The position numbers and the translations under genes are program-made. Of a DNA stretch of 64,000 nt, positions 33,201 to 60,912 are shown piece by piece. The notes under the pieces are model-generated. The model saw only the letters and a program-made list of their open reading frames with translations, had not been told where the DNA came from and searched no databases. Source of the DNA: Orbicella franksi (Eukaryota); contig OZ116705.1 in NCBI GenBank assembly GCA_964199315.1, positions 28,582,001 to 28,646,000 of the forward strand, written 5' to 3'. The stretch's first letter is position 1. Each line of letters begins with the position of its first letter.

Positions 33201-36200
33201 TCGTCCCTAGAGCCTCTGTTTCTTTAACGACATTTTAGAACGAGTAACACTGGGAACGAGAATGCCCCAAAACGGTCACTGTTAGAGGTATCTCGAATTT
33301 GTAAAATACTCCATTTACAGGCCAAAACTCAAGAAATTTACTGAAAACTTACGCTTTGTGCATCAAATCTGCACAGCAGATTTATTTCAATTGTTGTCCA
33401 TAGCGTCGTATTTTCATTTTCCTTTGTATTTCCGGTACGTTTTCTGACAGACATTCTTGCCGTTTTGTTTCAATCAACTTCAAGATGGCAAAGACAGACG
33501 TATCAAATGTTTTCACTCCACACTACCTCGGAGGAATTTAAAAACGCAACAATCACCGGTCATTTTGGATTTGTGTTTGAGGAAACCTCGGTCAGGAAAA
33601 TCACATGATTACCGTCATTATATCGTGACGTCATCGTTTTCGAAAAGCTCCGTTTTCTAAATGTTTTCCGTTCACACTAAAAAGCAAAGCCGCTGTTTCC
33701 AAATTCCTTCAGTTTGAAGAAAAGTCTCGTTTTCGTGACAGATTAGTGTGGACGTGTGAACGGTAGGCCTAACCGTAGAATTAAGGCGCGTTTTCGAATT
33801 CCTGCGGTGTAGGGACGGGGCCTAAATTGTTGCGTTTGAACGTTGCGCGCCTGTTTATATTATAAAGGATTAAATGGACATAATAAGTAATGAATGTAGT
33901 GGTTATCAGAAAACTTATTGACTCACTCTCTCATAGCCTGCGCAGCAAGCGTCCCCGTATACAAGACGAACCGGAAATCGAGCCTCACGAAAAATGGGGC
34001 GAGAATTGCTCTCGCCCCATTTTTGGCGCGGCTTGAATGCGAAAAAGGTCTTTCGCGCGGCGCAATGAAAAAGAACGCCTAATTAATCGCAGATTAGACC
34101 CGATTTCGCTCGGCTGGCTATACGCAGGATAACTCTCTCACCTCCTCACTCTCTAATTTCTTAAAGTGCACTGATACAGATTAAAACAGTCACCTTTTGC
34201 TTACTCTATAATGTGCGTTTTCCAGCACTCCGGTTTTTTTGTTAAACACAGTTGCTCTTCTTAGCTGTCAAATCAAGCCAAAACAAAGCGTCAGCTACTG
34301 GGAATCAAATGATAAATTTAGCAGCATTATAAAGGGTAAACCTTTAAGTAGAGTTTTCCAGATAGGAAGCCAATTTCCATGAGATCTGTGAGAGAGGTGG
34401 GTATCTTAAGTAGAACACAGGACTATCCTTGAAGAGATCCCGGGCTGACAAAGGGATTTTGCACGTAGGGCGTGAGATTTACCCCAGGGACGGAAGAAAC
34501 GCCCCTTCCTCCATCGTTTTAACCGTAGTATTACCACGGTTGAAGTAGCTGAAGTTCCCATTTTATTCTGCCCTATACTCATGATTGATAACCACAGTTA
34601 TTTTGCCCTTACGCTAGTTACGCAGCATATATTTCAAGAAAATTTTAGATTGTTGTTTCAAACCATGCGTAGTTCATGTGTTATGTTTGTTGCCGCTGTT
34701 TGCATTTTATTTCTTGTTAAATTGAAATGGTCAAAGAACAAGAGCGTTTATGATAGATTTCATGGCTTGTAGAATAATAGGTCTACCCCTTGTCTCGTGT
34801 GAACCCCCTAACAAAACGCCATAATCTACCAAGCAATAGAACAGTTTCACTCACGTGGCCAGCAGCCATACAAATTTATTGAAACAAAGAATGTGCCTCC
34901 CTAAGAAAAGAGTTCAACTCCCATAGTATTGGTTTGGAACATCAATATGGCCGCCGTTTTATTGTTCTTGTACACAAATATGGCTGCCGTGACGTCATGT
35001 ATGTGAAAACGCTCTTTACTTTCCCAATCTTGTTCCCAGGCTCTGTCTTCTTTGCCTCTCTTAGGAGGCAAACGAGAGAGAGCCTGGGAACGAGGTTGAT
35101 ACTTTCCCTACAGTTCGTATTTCAGCATACCCTGGGCGTGGCGACTTCCTTGATTCTGTTAGCCTCCGCTGTGCTCAGAAGGTTTCTAAAGATGATAAGA
35201 CGGGGTCGACGCCAAACCATTTCTACTTTAACAGGTCTGATCATAAGCAAAGGGTTCTTCTTCCCGTGATACCAACAAATCAGATTTCCTTGCGGAGTAC
35301 TCTAAGTCAGAAATGGAAAGGAAAAAACAGTTACGAGCTCAGTTAGTGAAATGTTCTGAAATTCACTGCTTCGCCATACTCGGCGAACATTACAAAGGAT
35401 GGAAATTTTCTTTTAAGCAACTTCCAGTCGTCACCGAACAAAATTTCTTGCCACATGTTATGGAATTCGCTGCTTTTGTATTTTCAAAACATTTTTACTC
35501 GGCAATATCTACCTAAGGGAGGTCCACTTTTTACAGATATCGACCTTCGGGAGGTATTTCGCCAGCTCGTAAAATGTCGGTCCGACGTTTTTCCATGCAA
35601 ATTTTCCCGAAAGTAATCCGTTTTTATCTTCTCCAATTTTGCCGATTCATGTCCCTTTTTGGCTGTCAGGTCTCTGTTTCGTTTGGGTTTTTCTACCGTT
35701 TTAAGCCGCTATTGTGATATTTCAGTTAATTCTGAAGCAAATTCATCCACTCAAAAACTGCTTAAAATTGCTTGACCTAATCTCTTTAAGCATTTCCCAT
35801 TCTCCTATCACAGACTGCGATAATAAGAAGCAGTTGGGTTTGCTGTGGCTATTCGAAGTTGGTTTACAGATGTCATTCCAATTATAGAAGCCATTACTGC
35901 AGAACAAATGGAAAGAAGAGAGAGGACTGGTACCTTGCTCGTATCGCCCCTGCACAGGCTCGCGTATTCTCCACTTGTAAAAGTAGTCGTGGTAATTTCT
36001 TCTTCTTTCGCCTTTATTTGCTCATGGGTGTCACGTGTGTTTTGTTCAGCAGCTCTTCTGTAGTGCATAACATTCTCTTTTGCCTGGGTGCTGTTGGGAG
36101 CTGTTTAAAAACATGTGAACAGTTTTTATTTCTGAAAAAACGAAGACTATAGGCCGCAAGCGCACTTTAAAGTGGAATAAAGAAATAAATAAAATATCTT

Positions 36201-37786: not shown

Positions 37787-40700
37787 TATTTAACTGTTGG
37801 CAACGTTTTTTTAAATGACTTGTCCTTTCATCGGTCAAAAATTAAGAGACAAGTCTGGAGTATTCAGCAATTTATAATTAACAGACCGATAACATATCCA
37901 AGTATTTTCGCTTTTGAGAATAGACAGTTTCTCTTCAATCTTTGTACCATTTTACCTTCAACTAAAATACATTGTTTTCTTTAAGGGTTCGATGCTCCTT
38001 TCTCTTGCTACATGCAGAAACTATTTAATACAACTATTTACACCATGCCATAGAAAATACAGCCAATCAGAATACAAGAAAGCCGTTGTATATTCAACGG
38101 TATTATTAGTTCGTGTGAGTATATGATCTATCTATAGAACGCGACTTTCCCACTCCAGCCCTGTCGAGCTCATTTTCTCTCAGTTAGAGGTCGTTCTGCC
38201 TAAACTCGTTCCCAGATCTCTCGTAAGCGCCCACAAGAGACCTGGGTACGTTCTGCCATTTCTTTCCACATCAGAACCATTTTTATGGGCAAAAAGACTG
38301 TTTTCAATTACTCATGATCACTGACAAATGTCGTTTTGTTTTTGGTTTCCTTTGCTCACCTGGAATATCATTATTCACCATGTCAGGAGTAGATATGTCG
38401 TATGTGTCTTGGAGCCGAAAGAGTGCGGCCATGGCTCCTATCAAGTCCTCATTGGAGGTTGGAAACTGCCATTTGTTTGACTTCAATAGATCTTTCAAAT
38501 CTACGGAAACAGAAGACAAGATTCAAACAAAAACATTTGGTTATAACATAACTAAAGCAAAGCGCGCGCTCTGATTGGTTAATTTAGCGTCTACTATTTG
38601 CCCATGGGTGTACGCTGCTGACGTGTGTGCTAACGTTTACAAAGCAAATCCTTTGACAGACATTGTTTCCAAAGTAATGGCCGACGTTCTTTTGCCAGAA
38701 ATGCGAAACTGTCTTCACAGTAGTCTGAAGATGAAACTTTATCGAGTTACTGGTGTGCAGTCGGTTGTCATGAATGAATTTTCGCGCGCTTGTTTTCTCT
38801 TGTCATGTAGGACTACACGAACATTTTTTTGTGATGTAGCTCAATAAAAGGGCTTCTGTTGTTCCAGTGTCTCAATGTTATGTTATAAAACAAATGGTAA
38901 ACGCCATAGCGTGCACTATTGAGTTAGGGATGCACTTGGGAGGTTTGCTAAGCACTCAAGAAGCTAGAGTCGCACTCGGCATCGCCTCGTGCGACTCTTA
39001 CGCTTCTTTCGTGCTTTGCAACCTCCCGCGTGCATCCATAACTCAATAGTACACGCTATGGCGTTTCCCATTTGTTAATTCTCTCAAACTTACTTCCGAA
39101 GACTCTTACGTTTATTCAAGACTTCCGTCAATATCCAATGACGACCGAAGCCTTCCGAAGATTACTGACGATTACCCGGAGACTTGTAAAGATTTGCAGG
39201 ACGTTTGAAGATATTTAGACAGAAAGTGGTTGGAAAGAGACCGGAAAGTTAACACATTTTTTTGATGGCCTCTCGAAAATTGCGGAATCAGTCATCCAAT
39301 ATCTTTATCAGCAGACTAAGTAATCGCATATTTTCTTACAATATATATTTTCTTAACAATATATTATGCTGTAATTTTAGTTTATAAACTTTTAATCTGG
39401 TAATGAATCTTTTGTATAAACGTAGGACTAACAGACCGAATTATGAGCATAAATGTGTCAACTGTCGTTCCCAATAGGCCAAGTTCGATAATTCTAACAT
39501 GGCTTCGAGGTTAGGACAAACCTCTATATTTGGTGTTGTTTTCTTTGTATCCAAGTCTCTTTTAGAAATTGAGAGACAAAAGAAATTTTAAAAATTTACA
39601 ATTTTGACCCGAAAGCCTCGGAGCCACGTTAGAATATTGATATATTCGCTCCGATCCGTTTCTCCAGACCAGGGACAGGGAAGTGCAAGGGATCTGGCAA
39701 CGAGTTTTGTCGTAGACATCTTAAAACATCCTGAGCTTGCCGAATCCTCCATTAAAAAAAAAATGTGCAGCTTAAAATCACTCTTGCTACTCAAATTTCT
39801 AGACGGCACAACTATAATCATAGTCACATTAGCCTGAGAAAGATGACGTATTTCCGGCTTTCGATTGTCTCCCGCAGAAAATATTTTCGGCGGAGACTTG
39901 AGGCTGGACAGCCGGAAACACGTCTGAGGTCGCAGCCATAGTCACATGGGACAATGCCTATTTTTCCCGCGTTTTCCGGCGGCGTGTTGCATGTTTTCGC
40001 TGTGATTTCTGATTGGTCCAATGCATGATTGACGTTTGCTGTAAACAACTAAACTTCCAAGGTGACTTTGATATCGGTTTTGCAGCAGTCATTAGGCCCC
40101 ACCAATCGGTTTTAAAATTGCATTGTTGAACTCGAGTGGAGATTATATTGACGAGGTTGATGCATTTAGTGTAATTCATAGAAAATACGACATGAAATAT
40201 TATCTAAACTTCAAAGAAAAAACCCTAGAATATAACTGGATTATTTTTTTTTATATTGATACTCAATTGTCCATACTTTTGTTTTCAGCGTTGCAATGTT
40301 ATTAGAATTTACAGGACTGATAAGTGTTGCAAATGTTCAGCTCGTGAAAAGCCATTTTACAATTTTTATGAAATATAAGATTGAAAATCGAGAAATGAAT
40401 ACAAATCTTGAAAAACCTAGCAGCGTGTAATAAAACAAGTATAGAAATCTAGTGATCATTAACGATGTTAATGAACGAAATAAAGAAACTTACCGTTCGA
40501 ATAATCCTTGTCCAAAAATTTGCCAAGCTCGCTCCATCCGTTCGCAAATCTTTTGATAAGAGCATAAGTTGTGGTTGGATTTTCTAGAGATTTCAATCCC
40601 TCTATCTTCACCCGATTCGTCGCTTCTTTGACGCTATCAGCAAACTGCTTGATCTGTTGCAATCTTTTCTTTTCTAACTCGACAAATTTCTCGAGGCTTT

Positions 40701-43054: not shown

Positions 43055-46000
43055 ATGGCGGAGATGTTCTGCGCTAGATTTTCCCTATTAACACTGACTT
43101 TTTACCTGATTTTGAGTAGAACTCAAGGTGAAGTGTTCACGGCCTTAATCGATCTAGAGAACCTAGTGTACAGAGAACGTGAATTGAGGTTCACTTTAGA
43201 AGAGTATGTCAATTTAGAGGAACAGAGGCTGACCAAACTCAAGAAGTTTCTCGCTAAAGTGAACGCCGCGCATAAGGTTGTGGGAGAGGATGTATCAAGA
43301 TATTTAGGACATCCCGTAAACTCTTATCTCGAAATTAGGAGGATGTACAAGGAATGGCCCGAAGCAGAAAGACTAGTTCAGCTAGACAATTCTGAGGGTA
43401 AGTTTAGTTTTTCAGGGAGATTTTCATATAAGTTTGGTTGCATTTTATCGAGGTGATGAATTCAATAACAACTCGTTTTAATTTGTCTCGCCGATTAATT
43501 TCTCTCAGTTATAAAATTGGAGAGCAGCTACCCACGTAAGCTTGTTTGCCTTAAATTATATCGATATTGTTATGGAGATCTGATTTAATTTTATTTTAAT
43601 TCACGTTTGTGATGAGGACTTCAATTTAAGCTATTATATGCAATCAATTTTACACTCTCGAGAGTGCGTAATCTTACGACTAAAGACTAATACGAGAAAA
43701 TTTTTGAACACCATGCTTATTTATTCCCTTAGTATTAATTTTGGCTGACGTGTCAGTCACTGATTTAATCCAATTCTAATTGACATAGCTTGATGAGTTG
43801 TCATTATTGTCTTAATTTATGCATGAACATTTTTTAATGACGGTTTTCCCGTTAGAACTGCATCTTGGTAATATTCTTGAGATTAGGCTATTTTACTCAA
43901 TTTGAAACTGAAATATTATAGAATCTGTAGAATCTGGTACTTAAACAGAAAATTATTCAATCCCCTACGATGATACTCAGATACACAGGGGCCGGGCTCC
44001 AGGCAAATTGACCGGCTGTGAGAATGATTTTGCCTGCCTGATTTGACTATCTAAAGGAAACTTTTCTTACACAGACGTTCAGTTCAAAACGGTTTGCCTG
44101 CCTGTGAAAGGCAGTTGCCCTCTTGCTGAAAATGTTTATGAAACCCCTGATACACAGATCAAAACTAGCTAGAACTGACCAATCACTGTTGACAGACCAT
44201 TGACAGTCAGCGATCACATCAAAACTAACCAATCAGTTCCAACAGACAAGACTTATCATTGACTGACAAACTAAAGTCTTTGTTCACTTTATCCAGATAT
44301 GGTTTCTGCTCAGATTGGAGCAAATTTTGTGATCATCCAAAGTCATTTTCAGGATTACCTTCACATGGATGATTGTAATAAAATTTACATAAATTTGAAC
44401 TGCAACCTTCCTTAGCTTATGATTTATAGTTTATTTTTTCTCATAAGTAACGCATTAATACTTCACAATTTTATTGCGAGGAGAATTAAGTTCGCAGATC
44501 ATCATATCACATGCTTTTGTCTGGCAGCTGTGAGTGATGCTATTACCAAGCATAAAGAAGCATTTCCAGGAAAAGAAGACTTTGACGGAGCAATCACGGC
44601 ACTTCTGCGACTTCAGGACACATACCAACTTCAACCTTCGTCATTTGCTCTTGGAAAATTACCTGGGTCAGTGCAGTCACCTAAAATGACAGTGGGTGAA
44701 GTTTATGATGTGGGACGACATGCATATCTCAACAGTGACATGTTTTACACGAAGACCTGGATGGAGGAAGCTTTGAAACAGTACAACAAACAGAATGAGA
44801 CTGAAGATGTCCGTCTGTTTGATGTGTATGATCACTTGGCATTTTCTGAGTACAAAGTGAGGAACATTGAACTATACTTATTTATTTTGTAGCTGTAAAA
44901 TGTTTCCTTGTTTACCATAAACTTGTAAAAACAAACGTAAAGAGTTAGTGGAACTAGTATCTATGGTTGCTATCTATTCCTTATAATGTTTATATCTGGT
45001 TTTATGTCGACATCCCTCATGATCAAGAATCAAGCATTTAAATCTTAAACCTTAACCATCCTAAGAACTTTTTCATAGGATTTCTGCTGTGGCAATTAAG
45101 GGCAGCTATTTTCCTACATGTAAATGTCAGGTTTCAAAATTCTCCACATTTGTCTTTATATTAACATAATAGGTGTTAGACAGTGGCATGAAGATATGAA
45201 TTATATTTTCCAGTTGTAAAACACAATACTTTACGAACAGGTGCAGCAAGTGAGTAAAATATTGCTTTTAACATGAGAAAATATGTCTAATTCATATCTT
45301 CAAGCCACTGTAATTTTCTTTTTATTACATAGACAAAGTGACTGTTTGCACAAGCAAATTCATGAAAAAGTGGGAAGTGACATCATCAATATCCTTACTA
45401 GTGGGGACATATATAATATTCGGCACTTGGTTCCTGGATACATGTAGTTTAGTATGAATTTTATGAGTGTATTTTCTAGTAGACATGTCTCTATAATACT
45501 AAGATTATGGTACTTAAAAATGATCTCCAGTCCGTACTGTGCAGTCTCAGCACCCTAATGTTTATAAACATGAAAATTCTCACTCGATGGAATGCAAATT
45601 GAAGTTATTCGTTATGAGCCACATACCTTATCTTTGAGGCTTTTCAAATTCTTTTTCCAACTGCTTCATTGATTTTTACAGCTGTTAAGTTGTTTCGTCA
45701 AGTGATATCATGTAAGTAGTTGCAAAAAGTTCACATTTTGTGATGTCATACATGAAACAAAACAAAAAATGTAAACATACTCTTGCGAGTGTGCAGTACC
45801 AACTGGAAATCATCTTTAATAGTAGATAAAAATGAATAAATTAAGTAAGTAATAAATAAAGGTAGTTAATACCTCAAGTCAGTTAATCAGCTTCAGTTGA
45901 TTATCAAGTAACAACCTAAACAGAGATATACATCTGTGTTTTGCATGAGGCTAAGTGCGTACATGTACTATCTTAGCTGTGGCATGATCAAAAAATATAT

Positions 46001-49000
46001 CATTTCCTGACTGGTTCTTTTGTTTACATTGCAGCGGGGCAACTTTAGAAAAGCATTGGAGTACTCTAACAAGATGGTAGAAATTGGTAAGTAAAAAAAT
46101 TAAGGTTGTTTGTATATGTTCTGTTGGTCATTGACACATTATTTAAAACAATTTCAATGTAAAATGGACAATTCACGAATGGCATAAATTTTTTCACATC
46201 TGATACTTTTTTAGTAGTTTCTTGCATGACCTTGCACATCAGTGATACAAAATGAAACCGGCAAAGCCTGTTGAAAGCAAAGAACAGGAAAGAATAGAGT
46301 GCAGAACCCTTTTCTTGAATCCTATTCCAAGGCTTTTTGAGAAGTCTTTCATCAGCTGAAGAAATTTTTTTTTCCCTTTACTGATAATGCTTCATGTTTT
46401 ACTATACAGTTGAGCCCTGCAATCTTGATTAAGGGAAACAAAAAATAGTTCGAGATGTTGGGGGTTTGAGATAGTAAGTGACTAAAAGTACGTATAACCA
46501 AGGGAAAATGATTTCAGTTTGAGTAAGCGGGAGGTTCAACCAACTTAATTAGAGATTGCAAGTTTCTTTTAAGGTTTGTTCTGCAATAGAGTCATGGCAG
46601 ATTCTGTTACAAATAACCATTACCAAATTCCCTGAACATTGCAATTTGCTCACTCCCTCCAAAAAAACACTCAACAACTTCATCTTAGAGTACTAGGAAC
46701 ATTTAATTTTTGTGCAGGAGTGGAGATAAAGACTGCATACAAGCCAAGTGGCCCATCACGCCAGCTGTTATCCTAGTTTCTGTAGAATGAAGTGACTAGG
46801 ATTATTTCTATTCCTTCCTGGATGGGATGCTGGTCCATCGCAGTGTTACCCCTGGCAGCATTAAATTTGCTGGTACCCATTTATACACCTGGGTGGAAAG
46901 AGGCACTGTGAGAGTTAAGCGTCTTTCCCAAGAACACAACGCAATGTCGTCGGCCAGGGCTCAAACCCAGACTGCTTGCTCAGGAGTTGAGCACACTAAC
47001 CATGAGGCCAACGCGTCTCCTTCGAGAGTAGAGATATTCGGTCATAATTTAAATAAACAAAAATGCAGCCAAATCCCTTCTAAGGGGGTGAGTAGGGAGT
47101 CATGGTCAAATACAAGACTCAAAAGTGGCAGATTTACATTTCCCGTGCTGATTTCTAACTTAGATTTTCTATTTTGTAGATCCCACACATGAAAGAGCTC
47201 AAGGAAATGTTGAATACTTTGGGGAAGAAGTTAAGATGTACAAGCAGACTGGTCGCAGAGGTGATACTGGAATTATCACTGATACGAAAGTGAAACCAAG
47301 GAGTGAGCGAGCTGACTGGCATCAAACATCTTCCTTCCAAAACTACGAAAGGCTGTGCAGAGGGGAAGTCAGAAATTTGGTGAGTAGATTGCACAATTGG
47401 TACCCAAGTTTGAGTGTGAGCTGAGCTTAATTTCAATTCAGGTTGGTCCAAATCCTAGTTTCTTTTAATTTACGTTTCACAATATTAATTACCCCTTCAA
47501 CAAAAATGTCAGTTTCATAACCACTGTCTAACCTCTATTAAGCAGCGACCTATGAAGCAGCCACCCTTTATTAAGTGACCAGTTATTTAAGTCCCAAAAT
47601 GACTGTCAGTAAAATACTGTAAATAAAACCCCTATTAACCGGTCACCTCTATTAAGCGGCTGCAGCCACTTTTTGGTCATCCTGATGAAGGTTTTTCCAT
47701 TGTCTTTACCCCTATTAAACAGCCACCCAAAATTTGCTACAGGTAAATTAACTTTGTTTTGGAAAAGGCAATGGTAGAAAAGAGTCTGAAAGAGAAGGTG
47801 ATGAGTGATAAAAACATTCAAACACATGTTTATCATAATTGTCTTGAAGTGACTCCATGTTCACTAAGAAATTAACCGAAAATAGGCAAACCCCTATTAA
47901 GCAGCCAACCCCTATTAAGCGGCCACCTCCCATTTCCCCTAGGGTGGCCGCTTAGTAGGGATTCGACTGTATTTCCTCTTGTCCATGTGTCTGTTCAATC
48001 ACATGTCATATCATTTTGAAATTTTTTTACAGACTGCATGGGAACAGAGTAAAATGACGTGTTGGTACCACAGTGCTACACCAAGATTAAAAATCAGGCC
48101 TGCAAAATTTGAACGAGTGTTTGTCAAACCCGAGATACTTATTATGCGGAACATTTTATCAGAGTCAGAGATGAACAAAATAAAGGAACTGGCTGCGCCA
48201 AGGGTAATGTAACTCTTTCTTGTTCTCGTCTATAAAACTCCCATAACGTAAGGCCCTGTGCACACTACACGAGAGGAATTTGAAAATGGAGGTTTCGCTC
48301 TGGAAACCCAGCAGATGTTTTCGTCCACACTACACAAATGCAACAATAACCAGTCATTCTGGATTCGTGGTTGAGGAAAACTTGGGCAGGGAAATCACAT
48401 TTATTATCACGATGACATCATTTTTGAAAAGCTCTGTTTTCAAAATGTTTTCTGTCCATACGAGAATGAAAAATTGGCGTTTTTAAATTTCTCCGGTTTG
48501 AAGAGTGTTGTCAAAAAGGTCTGTTTTTGTGATGGATTAGTGTGGATGGTATAGGCCTAACTGTAGAAAGAAAGCTCCATTTTCAAATTTCTCTAGCATA
48601 GTGTGGACGGGGTCAAGCTCTGAAAATTATGCGTTTACTTTCCCCCTTTCATTATTTATACCTGAAAGTGGGTGTAGTTTCACCTGGATACATGTATATG
48701 TCTTTTTCCATTTTTACGTTTTTGTGAGATTTATTTTCATAAATTGTGGAATTTAAGTAAAATGTTATCGGCAAGCTGACATTTTTTTCTATCTGCTGTT
48801 GCTGCTGCTGCGTTATGAACCACAAGAATTGCTTCATTGCTTTGTCTGGTTTTCGACATTCAAGCTTGTTAAACCAGGGTTGCTGACAGCCTTAATTTCT
48901 TAATTAAGCTTTGCAGACCATACTCTCTGATTGAAAAATGAATTGGAAAAAATGCACTTCAACAATAAAGATCATGTACTCTGCACACTATTGTTTTGAA

Positions 49001-52000
49001 CCCAGCAAAAAGTCTACATATGAGCAAAGTGGCCCATCAGGCCAGAGCTTATCCCAATTTCTGTAGCGTGAAGTGAATCACTAGGAGTATTTCTACTCCC
49101 CCCTGGATGGGATGCTAGTCCATCACAGGGTTACCCCCTGCATTAGGTCTGCCAGTATCCATTTATACACATGGGTGGAGAGAGGCTCTGTGAGAGTAAA
49201 GTGTCTTGCCCAAGAACACAACAAAATGTCCCCAACAAATTGTGTATTTACATGTAAGCAAACCTCAAAACTGTAGTTTCCGATACATCAAACATACAAT
49301 GTTAGCCAGGTACAACATACATCTCAAGTCAAAAATGTTCCAAAACACAGCACATTTGGAGCTTTATAGCATCTCTGAGACTAGACAACCGGAAAATCTG
49401 CAGGAGTTGATGAATATGTTGTCGTCTTATTAATGTTTTGGCATATTATTTGGTAAATAAGTTGTTAAAAATTGAAGGCTTTCGTGCAAAAAGGGTGTAT
49501 ATAACTTTTTGGGCCAATTTTGCTAAATTATGCATCATTGGGCTAATTTGCTTCACTATTTGAAGATAAAAAAGGAGATAACATGTACTATAGTTGGCAA
49601 AATCGTGTTTTCTATGACCTGAAAAAAAGCTTAATTTTTTAGGAGATTGTTTGCCTCAGGAAATAGGAGAGAACAGCAACAGTACTATATAAATTATCAA
49701 TGAAAAGCCACTCAATTTGCCTAGTGCCTGGCCCTTAATGAAACTGCTGGTGGTTGTTCGAACTTGTATGGGCCATTTACCAAGACATCTTTAACAATTC
49801 ATTGCTAAAAGATTTGAATTGAGCTTTGCACATGACAGAGTTTTAATTAGCTTGCAAAAATAATTTTGGTGACTTCTGTCATGAACAAGAAGAATAATAC
49901 AACCATGTTCACATGTCAACATTTGGAGATTGAACCAATCAAATTCGTGTGTCTCCCACTAAGCATGCTGATTGGGTACTAATATGCGTTATTGACCTTC
50001 TTATAATCAGCTTCGTCGAGCCACAGTAAGAAGTCCAACAACAGGACTGTTAGAACATGCAAATTATAGAGTTAGTAAAAGGTAATGAGCCATTGCTTGT
50101 ATCAGTCACTGCAGTTAATCTTATGTTTCACGACTACACACAACGAGTCAACATTTGTTACTTTGTGATCATCAAGAAAATTAATAATATTAAGATATTA
50201 ATTGAAAATTAATGATTTATTAACATTCCTATTAGAAATTGTGAAAATATATGAAACATTATCCAAGGCAGATGTGGCTCAAAATTCTGCTTCATATGTG
50301 GCTGACTTTGCTTTTCACATAATTTGTGTTATTATGTAATATTGAGTAATATTTATGCAACATTGCATAATTATGCAACTTTGTGTAATTATGCAACATT
50401 GTGAAATTATGCAACAAAGCCCAATGGCTATTTAAGCTATCACACCAAGCTGATCTTTTGTGACTTCAGGACTGTCATTTAACTGTCAATCAAATGGTTT
50501 TATGTATTCAGCAAGCCTGATGTGAGACTATTTGATTTTGTAGAAATCAACTCTTTACATGTGCAACTCTCTGACAGAGTCAAATAAATATGATTCTAAC
50601 TTTTATGTCTGTGAATCAAACTTCAACCCAGGGTACAAGTGTTCAAATGAAACCTCATGAGGAATGCTTTTTGTGCTACTAATTGTGATGCTGTACAAGG
50701 TGGTTCTAGCTTCTAAGTCTGTGGATGAAACCCTAATGTGTGACCATTCAAATGAAAGCTATTGAGCGGAAACATGTTTTACAGGTTTAACAGACATCAA
50801 ATTATGTAAATATTATAGCATTTTGTAAAGCTTAGCTCTAGTTTTTGTCACAATAAATACTCCTCTTTTTCTATATTGAGCAGTACTTTCATGTGGTACT
50901 GTTTATTATGCTGCACAAGGTGGTTCTAACTTTTAAAGCGTGTGGATGAAACCCTAATGTGTGACCATTCAAATGAATGCTATTGAGCAGTACTTTCATG
51001 TAGTAATAACTGAGTGTTTATTATGCTGTACAAGGTGGCTCTAACTTTGAGGTCTGTCGATGAAACCCTAGTGTGTGACCATTCAAATGAAAGCTACTGA
51101 GTAGTACTTTCATGTTGTGCTATTTATTATGCTGTGCATGGTGGTTTCTTTTATTGTTTTCATTAATGCAAAGGCTAACTAAAGCTCTTAACTTGGTAAC
51201 CTTTCCCTTCAGGTTCATGTGACAATTAACGCATAATAGTAACAGCTTGGTTTTCTTTGCATGTTGTTGTCTAATTATATAGCTTGCACGTGCTACAGTA
51301 ACTCTTGATGATGGAACTTTAGAGACAAGTGAACATAGAGTTAGCAAAAGGTTTGTGAACACAGAGTCGTGTCAAAATTAGGTTTAAACATAAAAAGCCA
51401 GCCCACCGTGACATAGTCTATGCAGCCGTTATTTGAGTTGTCACGCAACACTCCACCACTGACACAGCTGTTAGTGGGAAAGGAACGTTGTGTGACAACC
51501 ATGACAAGCACCATTACAAGTAAAAAAAAAATTTTTTTTCCATAAAAGACCAAAAATAGTTCGCTTTCCTGGAGATATCGCTTAAGGCTCGTGTGGATTT
51601 AACTGTCTTTCTTTAAAAATTGTCCACTATTTTCATATAAAAGAAGTCAGGCCACCTTAAGAAGAATGGCATTAGGGAAGATAAAAGACCAAAGATAGTT
51701 CACTTTCTTTGAAATATCCTGTGAGGCTTATGTGGATTTAACTGGCTTTCTTGCAGGCAGAAATGGCCGTATGTTATGTTCATTCACAAAACGAAAACAA
51801 AAAATAATATACATATTTGAAAACATTAACAACCTCAAATAGAATTGCTCATACCATGATGCTAGAACCAATGAAATCTCTTGAATAATGTTTATCATAC
51901 ATTTTGCCTATTATTTTTGTTCTCACTGGCTCACAGTGTATAGCTTGTTCATGATGACATCGAACTGTGATGCAATATCTGTGGACATTAACATTTAAAA

Positions 52001-55000
52001 CATGATGGCACAGGCGTCACCCCGACTTAAACCTTAATTAGATGCTGTGCGACTATTTCTCGAGAGCTAGTCCTGTTGAATAATGGCAAACATAACAGAG
52101 AAAAAACGTGATGACATGAAAATTGCGATACAAAAACGACTAATAATTTTCCAGGTCACCATGAAGAAAGCATGATTTTCAAAAATGAGCCGCAACATAT
52201 TCATGCAGTTTTAGTATAATTAAGACGCACAGGGTGTTGGGAGGAAGCTTACAATCTAGACTCTGTGTACCAGAAATTTTGAGCGTGAGATACGGAATGG
52301 CATGGGTACAGTGGGAGGTGCAGTATGTTGGAAGGTACTGGGATGTGAGATTAACAACAGCATATCATTTGCTTCCAGTCATTGCACACAGTCCTTAAGA
52401 CGGATTTTATTATTTTTTTTTTTATAACCACTATGTTATTTTACTTGATCATTGCCGTAATTCAAGCCAAACAACCAATAACCTTTACGTCGAAAAGGTA
52501 ATCAAATAAGTTCTGATAAGAGAACATTGAATTATTGTTACTGCCCTTCAATTTCTCCCAAGGTACTTCCTAAAAGTATTTGTTGACTTAGTGGTACATC
52601 TCTTTTTTTCTGTACCCTTTCTGCATCTTTAACAACCAGGCTTATTTCCTTAGGTCTGTGACAAACTTATCTTTCTGATACAATATCCTTCCCCCCCCCC
52701 CCCCCACAACCTCCTAACCCAACCCCGAACAACAGAAAAATGTTACAGCGCTTCTTTCGCTTTGCGAGGTCAAACCTATTTTATTAACTAATTAGATCAT
52801 AAGTTCGAGGTTTCTAAGCCTTTCACGTGATAATTTTTGATTACTTCTCTACGTTGTAAGTAGAACAACATGCGTTACAGAAAGATCTCACACGGTAACT
52901 TGCAATTGTGCATGTACGCAGATCGGTTTTGTCAGCAATTTCGAGTTTTAATGTCACTTAATGGTAGCCGTTCGTCTTTTCCTCTTCTAAGGATTTTTAT
53001 TATTGAGTAGTATTTCTTAATCTTCCTCCAAAACTTCAGAAAAACGAGAAAATATCAACAATTTGTAGACAAGATCTCAAGAGTCACTGGTTGCGCATTT
53101 ATGGCTTATAGTGAACGATTGCTCCACCAATCAGGCTGCAGCATTTGGTAAAATGGTAGAATTGTACTAATTAGTGTTATTCACAAACGTTTCCAAACAG
53201 CTTCGTCGTGCGACAATCCAACATCCTGTCACGGGGAATCTCGAACATGCGTCCTACCGTATAAGCAAAAGGTTGGTTACTGCTGTTTTTATCAGGTTCA
53301 TTCATATTTGGTGATTGCTTGGAGCAGAGATTCTAGGGATGGTTTTTTACAGGCTAGAATGTGAAGGCTGTTTTCATCCTACGGTCCCGATTGCCTCAGT
53401 CGTTTAGAAAACCTGCGGGGATAATTTTTTTTTAAACCAGTGACTATTGGTAATCCAAAGAAATAACCATAATTTTTTTTGACTTTGTAAACTAAATCTG
53501 GTAACAACAACAACGACTTTATTTTCTGAATTCAGATAATGCCAGGTAATGTCTAACTGTAAACAAGGTTCTAATAATTCTCAACTGACGGACTGTCTGA
53601 TTGACGGACGGACACACGAACTGAATGACTGACTGACTGACTGACAGACTGACAGACGGACGGACGGACAGACGGACTGACTGGCTGACTGACTGACTGA
53701 CCGGGACCTTACTGACTGACTGAATGACTGGCTGACTGACTGACAGACAAGTGATGAAAGAAACTAGCCAACGAACCAACTGTTGATCGACTGACTGACT
53801 GACTGACTGATGGACGGACGGACGGACTGACGACTCACTGACTGACCTACAGACAGACAGACTAGCAGCGTAAGAAACTAGCCAACAAACCAACTGTCAA
53901 TCGATCGAGGGAAAGAATCAACTAACCAACCAAAGAACTGCGCTATCCATCTACGTAATTATTAATGATTTAAACTATCGATCAAATATGAATGAGCCTA
54001 TGTTGATAACAGCTGTAACATCTTCATATGCTCGGTTTGTAATGGCTGACAATATAGAAAGACAGTTGAATCCACACTAATTGACTTGATTTTACGTTGC
54101 TCTGATATTTGATATAACGCGTTATACTGTAGACCTAACTGAATAATTATGTTTAAAGCGATTCTATATGATTTTCCAGACTTAGCGCTAAATTCTCAGA
54201 GATAATGAAGCGAAATATATTACAGCCAATCTTGAACTAATAAAATATAAACTTACATGATAAACATTATCATAACGTATTGTAGATTTGAAGATTCTTC
54301 ATTTAAACATAGGATCATGAAGACTGAATATAAGGCTAAAATAAGACATTCTATTTTTTTATTTCAAAAAAAAAATTGCACTTCATATATTTAAGTAACG
54401 GTGATTGTGGCAAAGATGAGAACATCAGGGTCTTCAAAACGTTATCTGGGCCGTGACACAATGTTCCTCAAGCGTGACAATCGTGACAGCCGCGTCGTTA
54501 TGTTACGCTCGAGAAGCGTGACGCCATAAATAACAGTAGTGACGAGCGTCTGATAGAAACATCTTCAATTTAATATCGAAAATGTCCATCGAGATAAAAC
54601 CATTCCTTTTAATTAATGAGAAAGGGAATTAATACATTTTAACTTGATCAACAATAATCAACAGATGATAATTGTAAACTTTGAAAGTTAAAATAGCGTT
54701 TGAATTGACACTTAAATGACAGTGCTGTAAAGTGTTCTGCAGCTTATTGATTGGTTTTCCATCCGGGAAATTAGTACTGATTTTATTACGGACCCGTATG
54801 TGAGAATTTCTTGAACCCGCAATTATTTGAATTCTCGGTTGTTTTCTTTTGTTAATTTATTTCATTTATTACGTTGTTTACTGTCTGTTGTGTACTTTTC
54901 TGAATTTTTATATTTTGTTTGTTTGTTTGGCTTTTTTGTTTTGTTTATTTTGTTTATTTGTTTACTTGTTTACTTCCTGTAAGTGGCTGGCTGAAGGACG

Positions 55001-58000
55001 AGGACCACGAACTCATCAGACGAGTGAGTCTGCGCATTGAAGATGTAACAGGCTTGACTATGGACACTGCTGAGGAACTACAGGTGTGTACTGTCAAGGG
55101 AGGGGTAGGAAAAATATTACCACTGCTGAAAAAGGGCGATCAATTTGATTGCTAATTGGTCTCTATTTGATCGTTACAATTTATGATTGGAAACTTCTAA
55201 TCCTCCAAACTGCTCAGTAATGTTCAAAACATTTTAGAACTTAGGAAACTGAATGGTTAATTGAGTAATTTCAAGGATGTTTGAATGGGTAGGAGGGAGG
55301 GGGGCTGAGTAGAGAGGGTACCTTTAATAGGCCATTTCCTCGTTGCTTTTTGCCTCTCTTTCAAAACGAGTCCTCTTGCAAAACCTTTCTTATCAAATGA
55401 GTTTGATTGGCATGAAAATGAACTTATAGATGAAACCCTTTTTCAAAACAATGGTTTCGCACAACAATGGTTTTAACACAGAGGCAAACGGCAACTCGGA
55501 AATGGCCTATTTCGCAAAACACCAGCCATGTCTGGCTGTTTACTGGGTCATGCCAAGAGAGGCTGAAGGGTAACAGAGTGAATCCCCCGTTAAAGGCCTT
55601 ATTCCCAAGGGAACCCCTGTCAAGTTATTTTTAGATCACTAACCTGTTTCGGAAATCCCGAGGGGGTCTAGAAACAGCCAATCATGTGACGAATTTTGCT
55701 CACGTGAACAGTCATCTCAGTCGGCTTTTCGCGCTTTTCATCCTCCGCGCAACGCGTGCGATAATATTATCCGCGGAGGAACTGGGTACCATGTCTAAAA
55801 ATAACTTGAGAGGGAATGATTATTGATTCTCTTTACTCTTCATAATCTCTGGCTCATTCACATAATTTAATATTCCAGTTTCGTCTTTGCTTACATATGT
55901 GTTTTAATTTTTTTTCTTGTAGATTGTGAACTATGGAATTGCTGGTCATTACGAACCACACTATGACTTTGCCCGAGTAAGAAAAATATTAAAGGCTTCC
56001 GTGAACAATTTGCATGAGGATAACGTGTGTACTCGTGTGCCCTCTGCAGCTTGTTAATTGTACAGTATGTTAACTCTGGTGCTGGGGTAGTCGTTACAGT
56101 AGGGCCCGGTTCGTACGTCGCATTTCGACGTCTGAATCGGCAGCTGCATTTCCGCCGCACGTTCGATTGGTCTTTTCGCATTATCCGACAGAAATGCGAC
56201 ACCGATTCAAACGTCGAATTTCTGCCGTGTTGAACCTAATACATACATCATGATGATGTATTGAGCATGCGTAAATTTGGTCTGGCCATAGAAAGAGAAA
56301 CAACGTGGCCTTTCTCGTCCCCAGTCCTACCTGGCAGAAAGGCTCATTGGCTCGATAATCATGTTGCTGATATGCTAGGTGCGATCTGCTCAGACGACTA
56401 CTTTGCAAGGACAAGTTGCAGTTTTAACCGGAGTTCTAACCTGAACATATCGCTACACATACTGCTGTATTGTCAGCCTTCTCCTTCTCGTTTGATTGAC
56501 AATTTTCCGCAACAACCCTTCGTCGTTTAGTATCTTCGTCCGCCTTATTGGATACTCTACGTTTAAGACATTTTCCGATGACTGACATACGCGACACTGC
56601 AAAAATGTTGTGTATATAACTGCGATGATCAATCATGTCTTCATACGCGACAGTATTAATTTTGAATTAACTGCGACACAAGCGCGACGTATGAACCGAG
56701 CCTTAGCTACTCCCCTAGACCAGTGGCACCACTCGGCCACAATGTCTTCCATAACTATTTGTGTGCCTGTGTTTTTCTGTTATAGGGCAATGAAGATAGG
56801 TTCACGTCACTAGGTACCGGCAATAGGATTGCTACGTTTTTGGCTTACGTAAGTCAGTGCAAAATTCCCTTTTTTAAATTAAAATATGAAACAGATTAAG
56901 TAAAATTTGAATTGGATATAGAAGTGAAATCAATCCTTATGCAGTCGTAGAAGCTGTTTATACATTCTAGAATGATCTACACTTAAAAAGGTAAAAACTG
57001 TGCATTAAGAAGAACTTATAACGGCCAAACAAATATTTTACTTCAATATAATCAATTAAGGGTCTCGACAGACTTTAGACTTAAGCTTTAGATAATAGTT
57101 CCTGTCGATAACTATTAGTGCTTGATAGAGGTTTTCTATACAGTAGAGGCAATACTATGTGTGGGAACCGAGAAAAAGAGTATCTCTGCATATGTCAGAG
57201 TTTATGGCTTGACATTGCTGGAAGCAAACTTTAGTGAAGGTTTGGCTGTCGAAAGGTGTGTCACGGAATAAGAAAACCTTTTTCGTGAGAATTGTTCGTT
57301 ATGACAACTTGAACTAAGGGACCGTTCATTTTTTATCAGGTAGGGGGGCTGGTGGGATTTGGGGGGGGGGGGGCCATGCGAAAAAAAATGGCTTTCGAGG
57401 GGGGGCCATCCCAAAAAAATAAGGGAAAAAGGGGGGGTCACGTGAAATATTTTAGTAAAACGTTAAAATGGCATAATGTTTGAATATCAAAAACATTGCT
57501 ATAGAATAAACATAGAAGGCAGGATACAAATTTATTACAAACTTTCCTTCTGCTTTAAAAAAACGTTTGGCAACAAAAAGCATTTGTAGCTACTGAAAAG
57601 AAGTATTTAACACTGTTATTTTCGAATGCAACTTTCACTGGCACTCATCTTCATCTTCGCTGTCGTCGAGTTCTTCGTCGCCGTTTGTGCTGCTATGGGA
57701 GTCTCTTTCACCAATGCTGCAAGAAGCAGCAATGCTTTCCGTCAGGGTGTACTCTTCAGGGTACATGAAGGTGTAAACATAATCTCTGACTTCCCGCTCA
57801 AGGTTGGTGGTGATTCTGCTTCTTGCAGCATTGGTGAAATAATTCCCTTCCAAGAGCTGTGCGATGTATGGCCCATCTCTTCTAAATAACGACGTGGCAA
57901 CATCCTCAACTTTAGTACACTCTTCCGGGACGGCCGTTCTAGGAGGGTACACAAGGCATTGTGGAAGATCATTTCCTAGCGGGTTTCCAACACAGATTCC

Positions 58001-60912
58001 ATAAACTCGTTGGACGTTGTTTTCAGTCCGCTTCCTCTTTCTTTCATTTGACTTTCTGCGGTTTTCTTTTTTCCTTCTCCTTTTGTTGATGTGCTGTTTG
58101 AGTATGCCCTTAAATATGCTGTTATAATTGCTCTTATTTTCTAGTTCTTCTGTCCTGCGTGACCTTCGTCAACTTAGCTTCTATACATTTGATCTGTTTT
58201 ACATTAAAACTGTGGGCATTCATCAATTCAGATGAGGGAGATGCCAATGAGAGGCCAAATGCCACACACTCAGGGCGAGCCATAACTAGGAGATCCGAAA
58301 TTGAGTTCTCTTTCTTTTGATTTGTTTTTCAAACAACAGCTCTCTGTAGTATAGGGATTGTAAATATTGTCTTCACAGTGAGCACAGAACGTGAAGTAGG
58401 GGGAAATATTAGAGAAATATTAAAAAAGTTGAAATCTAAATATTGTTTGTTCAATTTTTTTTTTTTGGGGGGGGGGTCATCCCAAAAAATGACCGCTATA
58501 AGGGGGGGGCATGTGAAAAAATTGGTAAGCTGAGGGGGGGTCATGCGATTTTTAAATGGTGCTTCCCAAATCCCACCAGCCCCCCCCTCCCTCATAAAAA
58601 ATGAACGGTCCCTAAAAGAAGTTGTTGAGAACTATTATTTTGCAATCATTTGTGGTAGAGTATTGAAACATAGTTTGTCCAGCATATAACAACTTTCAGT
58701 TAGAGGAGTTACGTCACGGTTTGCACATCTTGAAAAGTTTAGCCTAAATTTTTCAAAGTTCGTCGTTTGTAATCCGTGTTAATCTTCTCCATCCTTAACC
58801 ATCCTTGTTCTTTTATGTTTTATTGTTATCTCTTTGGTGTTTTCTATCTTAGTAAACTACTATTTTCAGGTTTCCTTGAATTTAAAAGTAGTTTTGTTCG
58901 TGGTCAAAATAACTCAAAATACCGTGACTGAGCTCTTTCAAGTGTCCTTGGTCCCGATTGTTCAGTGATTTTAACTCATTGTTCTCGTGTTTTCAGATGA
59001 GTGATGTCGAAGCAGGCGGTGGCACAGTGTTCACTCAAGTTGGCACAACTTTATTTCCTAGCAAGGTAATAGAGAAATTTGTTTAGATTGTCACGCAGTG
59101 CTCCCCATTGCCTGACGAAGTCGCGTTAAGCCTACAATAAATCACATTAGCTTTTAAGAAGAAGCTACTTTTTCATCTTTATCAATAAGACCATAAATAA
59201 AAGCCTTTCAAAAACTATGTTTAGGGCAACTGTGTCAGTCGCAATAGTCATAAATAAGCTATCGAATGGTTGGTCTGGTCATAAATAGGGTAGGGAAAAT
59301 CGCAGATTTTGGTCATAAATGGGGTAAGGGTTTTGGAAAGCGGGCCGCACACCCCCACCCAATTTTTCTGGGAGTACCCCCCACCCCCACCCGGGATCCC
59401 GACGGAGTCCAGGGCAGTCGGAGTCCCCCACGATGGTATTGTGTTCGTTTCAAGTTTGGAACTTCTGGCGACACTGAATCAGTACCGAATCGTACTGAAA
59501 TCACAACTGGTTTCCACCCACGATTTGAAGTTGTAATCCTAGCGCGAAATAATTCTCAGTGAAAATCCCGACAAACATTTCATTACGCCTGTAGAAATGT
59601 GACTGAAAGAGCTTCGATCGACCTTGAAACCTGCTTTAGATAGTCTCCATCCTCTAGTTCTTCTATAAATTCATCGAGAGCACTAGCAAAATGTTAACCA
59701 GTAGAGATTGGACAGGCGCGAACTCCGGGAATGGGTGTTGGGGCGCGCCCGTCTGCGCTTTGCCATTATAACTGTAAAATAAACGGTGAACGGACTAGCT
59801 TTAAATGGCGCCAGAAGTTTAAAAATACTAGCATCATAAACTTCTGATACCGCTGATATTTTGCTTTTAACCATGAAACAACAGGGAGACGCTGCGTTCT
59901 GGTGGAACCTGAAGCGCAGTGGAGACGGTGATGATAGCACAAGACATGCTGGCTGCCCAGTATTGGTCGGCAGTAAATGGGGTAAGATAAGTAAATATGT
60001 ATTTATTTGTGATATTAACCTCTTACTAACTGAACGCCAGGGCCGCACGGGAATATTGGCCCGAGCTCGTTGCAGTACCAACCGAGCGCAGCGAGGTCCG
60101 TACAAAAACATCCGAGGGCATATATTTACCCGTGCGGCTCGAGCAAGCTAGTTTAGTAAGCAGGTTGTTATATGGCAGTCGGCCCTTGAATTTTCCGCTT
60201 TTCAAAAAGTGAGAAATACACGGCCTATTCCCTTCGTATATCAAAATCTGACCAAAAAGAACCAATCAGAACCCTCGGATTTAACTCAAGACTACCTTGC
60301 CACATAATAAATGGCGTTACTGACCAGGCGCGACGCCAAGAAATAAAACTATTCACCGTGTCCTACTTTGTTCGTGTGAACCGAGACGAAATCGCGGACG
60401 AAAACAATAAACAACGCAATATTTACAACGTTTGAATCGAACAGTCATGACAAATGAGGGTTTCTTTTCTTACTCAGAAAAGGTTATTGAAATAGTCTTC
60501 AAGCGAGTTTTCCGGTCAAGTACAAACGAAGCCAGACGCTCTCTAGAACTGATCAATCGCTGTTAACACCCGTGTTACAGCCAATACTATCACGGCTAAA
60601 CTGACCGATCAGTTTCAACGCACCAGAATTATAACACCATGGACTGACAAACACTATTCAATCCAAAAATGACTGCCGCTAGGATTCCTGAAACGTAAAT
60701 CAAAATAAAAGTCATCTTCAGAAGAACTATAAACTTTGTAAAACGTCAAGTCCTTAGAGGGTCTTGTATCTGATGAAAGCAAAACCTCAGAAGGATTTGT
60801 TTTTTTTTTATTTTGTAATATCGTATGTTCATGTTTTTCAGTGGCCAACAAGTGGATTCATGAACGCGGCCAGGAATTCAGAAGACGCTGTGGTCTTTCT
60901 CGACACGAGTAA
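43055..60912 (+). CDS. P4HA: Prolyl 4-hydroxylase alpha subunit, paralog 2 (12 exons, 538-539 aa; exon 6 present as three alternatives)
   Basis: Exons are 43055-43397, 44528-44856, 46035-46086, 47180-47379, 48033-48203, [50011-50081 or 51283-51350 or 53201-53271], 54984-55083, 55923-55976, 56786-56848, 58997-59065, 59885-59981 and 60842-60912, all GT-AG and in frame. Motifs: signal peptide, GEVFTAL, RLQDTY, LCRGE, SKSGWL, VNYGIAGHYEPHYDFAR, GNRIAT, TRHAGCPVLVGSKWVANKWIHERGQEFRRRC. Confidence 0.96.
46734..47020 (-). mobile_element. tRNA-headed CORE-type SINE
   Basis: On the minus strand: TGGCCTCATGGTTAGTG (A-box), GGGTTTGAGCCC (B-box), then GTGTTCTTGGGAAAGACGCTTAACTCTCACAGTGCCTCTTTCCACCCAGGTGTATAAATGGGTA (CORE-like). 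Confidence 0.75.
47521..47970. mobile_element. Tc1/pogo-like non-autonomous element
   Basis: Internal repeats of CC(C/T)CTATTAAGC(G/A)GCCA; the right end is GGGATTCGACTG followed by TA. Confidence 0.6.
48249..48617. mobile_element. Harbinger-like MITE family, copy 4
   Basis: TAAGGCCCTGTGCACACTA ... TAGTGTGGACGGGGTCAA; core shared with copies 1-3. Confidence 0.7.
49014..49234 (-). mobile_element. 5'-truncated CORE-type SINE (same family as 46734-47020)
   Basis: CAAAGTGGCCCATCA..GGATGGGATGCTAGTCCATC..CCATTTATACAC..GTCTTGCCCAAGAACACAAC is collinear with 46734-46950. Confidence 0.75.
50011..50081 (+). CDS. P4HA(+) alternative exon 6A (71 nt; LRRATVRSPTTGLLEHANYRVSK-S)
   Basis: ATAATCAG| acceptor, TACTAAT branch-like motif at 49977-49983, AAAAG|GTAATG donor; phase 0 to 2. 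Confidence 0.9.
50594..51148. repeat. Tandem repeat, unit of about 105 bp, about 4.5 copies with an interruption
   Basis: Repeated GTGGTTCTAACTTT..GTGGATGAAACCCTAATGTGTGACCATTCAAATGAAAGCTATTGAGCAGTACTTTCATGT..TTATTATGCTGTACAAG. Confidence 0.85.
51283..51350 (+). CDS. P4HA(+) alternative exon 6B (68 nt; LARATVTLDDGTLETSEHRVSK-S)
   Basis: TATATAG| acceptor, AAAAG|GTTTGT donor; phase 0 to 2, no stop codon, one codon shorter than 6A and 6C. Confidence 0.8.
53201..53271 (+). CDS. P4HA(+) alternative exon 6C (71 nt; LRRATIQHPVTGNLEHASYRISK-S)
   Basis: CCAAACAG| acceptor, TACTAAT at 53165-53171, AAAAG|GTTGGT donor; phase 0 to 2. Confidence 0.9.
53580..53870. repeat. Compound tetranucleotide microsatellite (GACT/GACG/GACA)n
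   Basis: Long runs of GACT, GACG and GACA units. Confidence 0.9.
55326..55511. mobile_element. MITE with a 14-bp perfect TIR
   Basis: AATAGGCCATTTCC / GGAAATGGCCTATT. Confidence 0.75.
56102..56703. mobile_element. PIF/Harbinger-like MITE
   Basis: Ends GGGCCCGGTTCGTACGTCGC / GCGACGTATGAACCGAGCCT in a TWA/TAG-like context. Confidence 0.65.
57318..58612. mobile_element. PIF/Harbinger-like non-autonomous element (1295 bp) with an internal open frame
   Basis: TIR of about 47 bp (GGGACCGTTCATTTTTTAT..GGGGGGCTGGTGGGATTTGGG) at both ends, perfect TAA TSD (57315-57317 and 58613-58615), and a stop-free frame at 58168-57635 on the minus strand. Confidence 0.85.
58703..58935. mobile_element. Non-autonomous DNA transposon, copy 2 (see 6797-7030)
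   Basis: Collinear high identity with 6797-7030. Confidence 0.7.

Follow-up and report, generated by a model that had tools for sequence, protein, structure and literature searches.

The pair of mutually exclusive exons in the vertebrate gene P4HA1 (collagen prolyl 4-hydroxylase alpha) is a textbook case of alternative splicing. To our knowledge, mutually exclusive exons common to vertebrates and invertebrates are rare, and none are well documented in sponges or cnidarians. In the human gene, the mutual exclusivity of the pair has been documented (PMC11868403; PMC9676403), and recurrent tandem exon duplication in orthologous genes, as in the ion channels of human and Drosophila, has been described as common (PMC9741552). 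The present analysis concerns a stretch of 64,000 nucleotides (nt) of genomic DNA from the coral Orbicella franksi (contig OZ116705.1, positions 28,582,001 to 28,646,000), called the window below, in which a P4HA gene carries three tandem homologous exons, designated 6A, 6B and 6C, at the position of the vertebrate pair. These exons most likely form a three-exon mutually exclusive cassette, and the comparison with other animals leans towards separate duplications in the vertebrate and the anthozoan lineages. The literature searched did not yield any account of a P4HA cassette in cnidarians or sponges; the coral isoforms themselves are already present in automatic RefSeq annotation. Because the encoded loop grips the collagen chain, the choice between the copies probably influences which prolines the enzyme hydroxylates. 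As this hairpin exon has been multiplied in sponge, anthozoan, nematode and vertebrate lineages, P4HA lends itself to a compact test of a broader question, namely whether early animals diversified their matrix enzymes by splicing duplicated exons or whether one structural loop was repeatedly chosen by evolution.

Three probably mutually exclusive exons in a coral P4HA gene

All three exons are preceded by AG, start in phase 0, end with a lysine codon plus AG and are followed by GT, and the four introns that separate exon 5 from exon 7 measure 1.2-1.85 kilobases (kb) (Table 1). A tblastn search of the whole window with the cassette exon returned the three copies plus one in a neighbouring paralog and no others, with E <1e-5 for 6A, 6C and the paralog copy, so the likeness between the copies is not a matter of chance. 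The cassette therefore consists of homologous exons in tandem that agree in phase and are each flanked by splice sites, which is the arrangement by which mutually exclusive clusters are recognised. Sequence and translation agree in this respect with a first-pass annotation of the window, which had placed three tandem homologous exons here and had noted that 6A and 6C share a length of 71 nt and the same phases. The reading frame adds a constraint of its own. Premature stops appear when the cassette is skipped and equally when 6A is joined to 6B, 6A to 6C or 6B to 6C, or when all three exons are included; since zero, two or three copies run into stops, the frame enforces one cassette exon per productive mRNA.

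The membership of the gene in the P4HA family is supported along its entire length. The best full-length protein matches are the P4HA proteins of Montipora, Acropora, Oculina and Porites, which identifies the source as stony-coral DNA, and residues 1-539 of the Montipora protein (P0004) are covered by 12 tblastn blocks between 43055 and 60909. Exon 2 matches the Pfam families P4Ha_N (PF08336, E 2.5e-11) and TPR_P4H (PF23558, E 3e-9), so that an N-terminal P4Ha_N domain is followed by a TPR-like peptide-substrate-binding domain. The C-terminal 2OG-Fe(II) dioxygenase domain is colinear with that of known P4HA proteins: residues 300-539 of the Montipora ortholog match the human P4HA2 catalytic domain (7zsc) with E 7.7e-84, and the HYEPHYD motif is located in exon 8.

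Table 1. Positions in the window of the P4HA gene, its cassette, the candidate intronic pairing arms and the neighbouring paralog
Feature	Position	Length	Strand	Description
Cassette exon 6A	50011-50081	71 nt	+	RATV...RVSK; 23 residues; AG/GT; translation LRRATVRSPTTGLLEHANYRVSK
Cassette exon 6B	51283-51350	68 nt	+	One codon shorter; 22 residues; short loop ...DDGTLE...; AG/GT; open frame; translation LARATVTLDDGTLETSEHRVSK
Cassette exon 6C	53201-53271	71 nt	+	Canonical type, RATIQHP.TG.LE...YRISK; translation LRRATIQHPVTGNLEHASYRISK
Constitutive exon 5	48033-48203	171 nt	+	Ends in phase 0 after ...ELAAPR; donor of both RNA joints
Constitutive exon 7	54984-55083	100 nt	+	First base finishes the Ser codon opened by each cassette exon
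P4HA gene	about 43055-60912 (coding sequence)		+	12 coding exons, cassette counted once; tblastn, Pfam
Candidate pairing arm, 6A	50467-50490		+	About 385 nt past the 6A donor; complementary to 54704-54727
Partner arm, 6A pair	54704-54727		+	In the intron from 6C to exon 7, about 255 nt ahead of the acceptor of exon 7
Candidate pairing arm, 6B	51591-51615		+	About 240 nt past the 6B donor; complementary to 54053-54077
Partner arm, 6B pair	54053-54077		+	Intron between 6C and exon 7
Head-to-head P4HA paralog	about 40824 down to 30304		-	tblastn
Lone cassette-type exon of the paralog	34194-34264	71 nt	-	RATV...RVSK; tblastn; one copy in the gene

The use of the copies in RNA was followed with raw polyA reads of a close relative (runs X23 and X21) and with transcript contigs (X2 and X4), mapped on positions 48000-53999, a stretch that ends before exon 7; the joints given are those with the best support. 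The exon 5 donor is joined to 6A (48203>50011) in 6 raw reads of X23 and one contig of X2, and to 6C (48203>53201) in 12 X23 reads, 1 X21 read and one X4 contig. A joint between 6A and 6C is absent among the joints listed for this stretch. The 6C type was also carried by all of the Logan coral protein clusters recovered in a protein search (9/9). The expression of both 6A and 6C suggests that corals control collagen processing at the level of isoforms, and studies of the skeletal organic matrix and of the mesoglea may need to account for it.

The situation of 6B is different, as a joint from exon 5 to 6B is absent among those listed from the four RNA runs, and this speaks against a cassette in which all three exons are at work. 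Read depth over 6B is zero in both raw polyA runs, and in X2 and X4 the exon is covered only by low-depth, unspliced-looking contigs. Such a pattern is what a decaying or silent copy would produce, in which case the working cassette would be a two-way choice between 6A and 6C. We consider this improbable, because the frame and both splice sites of 6B are intact, because Nematostella and Dendronephthya have annotated isoforms with a short exon in this place, and because the RNA sample is limited to four runs of unspecified tissues and stages. Further, 6B is identical at 20 of 22 residues to an exon used in a gene model of Acropora cervicornis, an identity across the deep stony-coral split that implies purifying selection. 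On the strength of this identity, we take 6B to be maintained by selection.

The segment exchanged by the cassette corresponds to a known structural element. In human alpha(II), the hairpin loop comprises Arg363-Val376, the stretch RATVRDPKTGVLTV, and the loop belongs to a pair of substrate-binding loops by which the peptide is enclosed in the complex of an algal P4H, being disordered when no substrate is present (PMC9676403). Aligned across the cassette exon, the human P4HA2 catalytic domain (7zsc) reads LARATVRDPKTGVLTVASYRVSK, and the stretch RATVRDPKTGVLTV falls inside the exon. Because the hairpin loop lies within the exon, the cassette swaps the substrate-contacting loop and keeps the strand ends (L.RA... 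and ...YR.SK). Each copy would thus supply its own version of the hairpin, which together with a second loop of the catalytic domain closes over the peptide substrate, and the isoforms would be expected to differ in the X-Pro-Gly contexts or in the collagens that they hydroxylate.

The hairpin exon in other animals

The vertebrate pair is the closest described relative of the coral cassette. Fish P4HA1 isoforms differ in the hairpin segment alone, LRRATISNPITGVLETAPYRISK versus LKRATVHDPITGKLTTAQYRVSK, which is a near letter-for-letter match to the alternative peptides that the first-pass annotation had given for human P4HA1. In the zebrafish p4ha1b locus (L003), the two exons, at 10153 and 12868, are both 71 nt long with the boundaries AG/L...K+AG/GT. 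Since these lengths and boundaries are shared, the positional homology between coral and vertebrate holds, and the coral cassette does sit, as had been proposed, at the vertebrate mutually exclusive exon, with the same boundaries, length and phase. Coral and vertebrates therefore vary the same exon of the same gene family, encoding the same substrate-binding hairpin loop. In contrast to the vertebrate pair, the coral has three copies, one of them of 68 nt, and its canonical-like exon comes last, whereas in fish it comes first; what the non-canonical coral exons have of the vertebrate V-type residues is limited to two Val-for-Ile changes.

The cassette turned out to be much older than this coral, since other stony corals, a sea anemone and an octocoral carry multiple copies. 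In Montipora, Acropora and Porites, this exon is precisely where the RefSeq isoforms diverge, with either an A-type or a C-type sequence, the A-type being annotated as isoform X2. Nematostella has four copies, in the order 22 residues, 23 residues, 22 residues (NGTL) and canonical IQHP, and the octocoral Dendronephthya also has four, two of 23 residues, one of 22 residues (EDGSL) and the canonical IQHP exon. The demosponge Amphimedon has three copies, of which the last is the one with 22 residues. The copies of these three species are all bounded by AG/L...K+AG/GT. The arrays of Nematostella and Dendronephthya (RefSeq isoforms X1-X5) resemble that of the coral in their position, in the canonical IQHP exon, which is the last of the array in the anthozoans, and in the 68-nt short-loop exon just before it. 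They differ from it in having four copies, the upstream ones of which cannot be matched one-to-one with 6A by sequence. The pattern that the first-pass annotation had named as contrary to an ancient origin, with 6A, 6B and 6C clustering together and the other cnidarians having a single exon, was not observed: other anthozoans have three to four copies, and 6C groups with their canonical exon. Two of the loci contain additional fragments. In Nematostella, a partial fifth copy of the second exon (15 codons plus the donor) lies 27 nt after it (L001:10602-10646) and looks like the remnant of a recent local duplication. In Dendronephthya, a near-identical canonical exon without a proper acceptor and with one residue changed is found about 1.2 kb beyond the gene end (L005:14201-14266), and is probably a fragment of a duplicated gene.

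Some other lineages have a single hairpin exon. The loci of Rhopilema, Hydra and Saccoglossus contain one copy each, which is fused to the next exon in Hydra and Saccoglossus. For three hemichordates, a crinoid, a spider, a tick, a thrips, a firefly and a stick insect, the annotated isoforms are alike in this exon. Among the intermediates between cnidarians and vertebrates that were sampled (the Saccoglossus locus and these nine bilaterian isoform sets, with amphioxus and tunicates outside the sample), the two vertebrate types were not found together. In two strongylid nematodes, read-through gene models, rather than genomic loci, show a 22-residue exon, LERATVKAEDGSLITVNYRISK, directly 5′ of the canonical 23-residue exon. 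The strongylid models (P0365, P0411 and P0478) reveal an unannotated tandem pair of the hairpin exon in a phy-2-like gene.

The correspondence between individual coral and vertebrate exons is a separate matter. The first-pass annotation had paired 6C with the vertebrate exon of RATI/RISK type (I-type), and 6A and 6B with that of RATV/RVSK type (V-type). Exon 6C is identical to the fish I-type at 17/23 residues and to the fish V-type at 13/23, but it is nearer to the single exon of the acorn worm (19/23) and to the last Nematostella exon (20/23), and the single Saccoglossus exon likewise prefers the I-type (17 identities, as against 12 for the V-type). Because single-exon invertebrates show the same I-type preference, what 6C has in common with the vertebrate RISK exon is best read as retained ancestral sequence, and the pairing of the two is not supported. 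The pairing on RVSK does not hold up either: 6A has 15 identities with each fish type and 6B has 11 with the I-type and 12 with the V-type, so neither prefers the V-type, and RVSK recurs in unrelated lineages, being found in Priapulus, in lamprey and in human and Polypterus P4HA2, while a bryozoan has it in the form RVSR. RATV, for its part, is combined with RISK throughout arthropods and nematodes. Judged by these sequences, the distinction between RATV/RVSK and RATI/RISK is a homoplastic signature.

The order of the exons points in the same direction. In fish, the I-type exon comes first and the V-type second, both in the zebrafish locus and in the read-through models of more than 10 fishes. 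The coral has its RVSK types first and its RISK type last, so the order is the reverse of that expected from the proposed mapping. Isoform 1 of human P4HA1 presumably contains the V-type exon. This isoform uses exon 10 (PMC9676403), which, combined with the assumed V-type identity, would agree with the order in fish.

Origin of the copies

The equal boundaries in sponge, cnidarians and fish suggest that the hairpin exon itself is ancestral to animals. The coral array would have been inherited from an early anthozoan array with the canonical exon, here 6C, as its last member, and the vertebrate pair, in which the I-type is first and the V-type, common to P4HA2 and lamprey, is second, would most likely be a separate duplication. 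The hairpin exon would thus be a recurrent hot spot and not one cassette kept from the cnidarian-bilaterian ancestor. We give a modest preference to this reading, in which the vertebrate pair and the anthozoan array were duplicated separately. It is favoured by the reversed order, by the lack of type-specific shared residues, by the single-copy intermediates and by a tendency of the family. P4HA genes tend to duplicate exons of the catalytic domain, as seen from the ANYG..HY.PH.D exon, which has been duplicated in nematodes and hemichordates. As in the ion channels of human and Drosophila, the same exon yields mutually exclusive isoforms in distant lineages; unlike in those cases, independence in P4HA is only the more likely reading.

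The ANYG..HY.PH.D exon, which contains the iron-binding His-x-Asp, occurs in tandem or as an alternative exon in Caenorhabditis remanei, Nippostrongylus and hemichordates (L006:39288-39344 and 39399-39461; proteins P0379, P0366/P0369, P0184/P0325 and P0177/P0323). In Ptychodera, the exon that follows it also differs between isoforms. In the window, this exon is single (55923-55976). The published "equivalent exons" of C. remanei were considered as possible copies of the hairpin exon; the only read-through model found for this species duplicates the ANYG..HY.PH.D exon instead.

Exon phylogenies were built by maximum likelihood (ML) for 43 and for 57 exons (23 columns, LG+C20), and both trees largely lacked resolution, with bootstraps that had not settled. 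In these trees, 6A clusters with coral A-types alone, 6B joins the B exon of Acropora (100/100) and stands beside the coral A-types in the 57-exon tree, and 6C clusters with the anthozoan canonical exons. Vertebrate V-type and P4HA2 exons grouped together in the 43-exon tree (88/80), and in the 57-exon tree both fell in one weak group (84/77) with no finer structure; in this second tree most of the short exons were also found in one weak group (84/77). The types of the first-pass annotation, that is, 6A and 6B with the vertebrate V-type and 6C with the I-type, were not grouped in either tree. Forcing 6A and 6B into a clade with the V-type costs 18.3 log-likelihood units, with a p value of 0.11 in the approximately unbiased (AU) test. 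The AU p values of the other constraints were 0.30 for 6C with the I-type, 0.235 for all short exons and 0.113 for the vertebrate I- and V-types together, so that none of the four is rejected. With 23 columns only, the exon trees cannot decide the origin. The phylogenetic check suggested by the first-pass annotation consequently cuts both ways: the types do not cluster across phyla, and the clades that would unite them are not rejected when imposed.

Several points tell against separate duplication. The alignment that leaves the RVSK clade unrejected disfavours a clade restricted to the vertebrate I- and V-types to the same extent. The human P4HA1 event has been dated to Bilateria (PMC8373072; PMC9741552 supplement). 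Strongylids, like anthozoans, have a 68-nt short exon directly 5′ of the canonical one, and the nematode and octocoral short exons are identical at 15 of 22 residues, as against 13 between each of them and the canonical exon beside it, which fits an ancient pair. Finally, spare copies are easily lost, so that single-copy lineages are weak evidence.

These points bear on a second explanation, according to which a short (68-nt) and a canonical (71-nt) exon formed a pair before the split of cnidarians and bilaterians, and perhaps before that of sponges, with 6A and the vertebrate V-type as later additions. This explanation is plausible, if in our estimate rather unlikely. The survivors of such a pair would tentatively be 6B and 6C in the coral, X3 and X1 in Nematostella, e3 and e4 in the octocoral, and the short and canonical exons of strongylids. 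Apart from the shared identities of the nematode and octocoral exons, the short exon is found immediately 5′ of the canonical one in coral, Nematostella, Dendronephthya and nematodes, every short exon has one residue fewer before the D/N-G turn, and the weak group of most short exons is accompanied by a monophyly that the AU test does not reject. However, 6B groups with coral 6A, away from the other short exons, and has only 10/22 identities with the short exons of Nematostella and of the octocoral. In the sponge, the short exon is the last and not the penultimate one, the one-residue deletion that gives a tight D-G turn could recur, and the nematode support consists of read-through gene models and not of loci. 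If the explanation were true, which we doubt, a module surviving in anthozoans and nematodes would be among the oldest alternative-splicing events known.

The least probable explanation is that of the first-pass annotation, in which both the RATV/RVSK and the RATI/RISK types existed in the cnidarian-bilaterian ancestor, 6C being the ortholog of the RISK exon and 6A and 6B those of the RVSK exon after one extra duplication in the coral: the exon, its length and its phase are indeed equal in coral and fish, the shared letters are really present, the AU test rejects neither the RVSK clade (p 0.11) nor 6C with the I-type (p 0.30) and the literature puts the human event at Bilateria or earlier, yet 6A and 6B have no V-type preference, single-exon invertebrates share the I-type preference of 6C, RVSK and RATV arise independently in many lineages, the genomic order is reversed, the types group in neither tree, and medusozoans and the acorn worm are single-copy. 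What stands of that proposal is that the cassette is old and occupies the same exon; order, identities and homoplasy speak against the mapping of the types.

Candidate intronic pairings and genomic surroundings

Besides the reading frame, RNA pairings within the introns may help to secure exclusivity, by looping out the copies downstream. Two candidate pairs were found, each linking the intron behind 6A or 6B with the intron that precedes exon 7 (Table 1). The arms of the 6A pair are complementary at 22 of 24 positions (duplex -31.9 kcal/mol) and those of the 6B pair at 23 of 25 (duplex -36.3 kcal/mol), and the score of neither pair was reached in dinucleotide shuffles (0/200). Pairing would bring the donor of 6A or 6B near exon 7, leaving 6C as the default. 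The two pairs are nested, with separate docking sites, and do not compete. A local direct repeat of 72 nt contains the left arm of the 6B pair. An origin of the arms as transposon copies was considered and discarded, as the 81-nt flanks occur only once in the genome. The role in splicing suggested for the coral pairings, deduced from their complementarity, is tentative. Complementary intron pairs above background were absent in Nematostella, none were found in Dendronephthya, and zebrafish showed only microsatellite complementarity. In zebrafish p4ha1b, a dinucleotide repeat before the first alternative exon (L003:8937-9008) has its complement after the second (13751-13837); the two could pair, and both are simple repeats.

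In the sponge Amphimedon, two segments (L004:3962-3975 and 4227-4245), which follow the first and second copies at distances of 30 and 22 nt, are complementary to overlapping stretches of a single site (4613-4638) before the constitutive exon. The duplex energies are -28.5 and -35.5 kcal/mol; in 1000 shuffles, two such pairs never arose. This layout looks like the classical docking/selector arrangement. Coral and sponge share with the docking/selector clusters of arthropods (Dscam, 14-3-3 zeta type; PMC6071210) the placement of complementary sequences, past the non-terminal exons and in the intron before the constitutive exon. Unlike in arthropods, the candidate docking sites of the coral are separate and nested, and overlap occurs only in the sponge. 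If the resemblance were true, a sponge would already employ docking/selector pairing, an idea that we put forward with considerable reserve.

The introns of the cassette also contain repeats. Dispersed repeats are found at 49000-49400 and at 50650-51130, the second being an array with 114-nt spacing; both have very high RNA depth with many variants, which indicates that the reads derive from other genomic copies. A long (ACTG/ACGG)n-like microsatellite occupies 53576-53870, about 300 nt past exon 6C.

Three more P4HA paralogs elsewhere in the genome have one hairpin exon each within the 10 kb examined per locus. The neighbouring paralog on the opposite strand has a cassette-type exon whose DNA is nearest to that of 6A (47/71 identical). 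The start codons of the two genes are about 2.2 kb apart, and the same head-to-head P4HA pair is found in Nematostella (L001:1-1639), which implies that the two genes were already paired before anemones and stony corals diverged.

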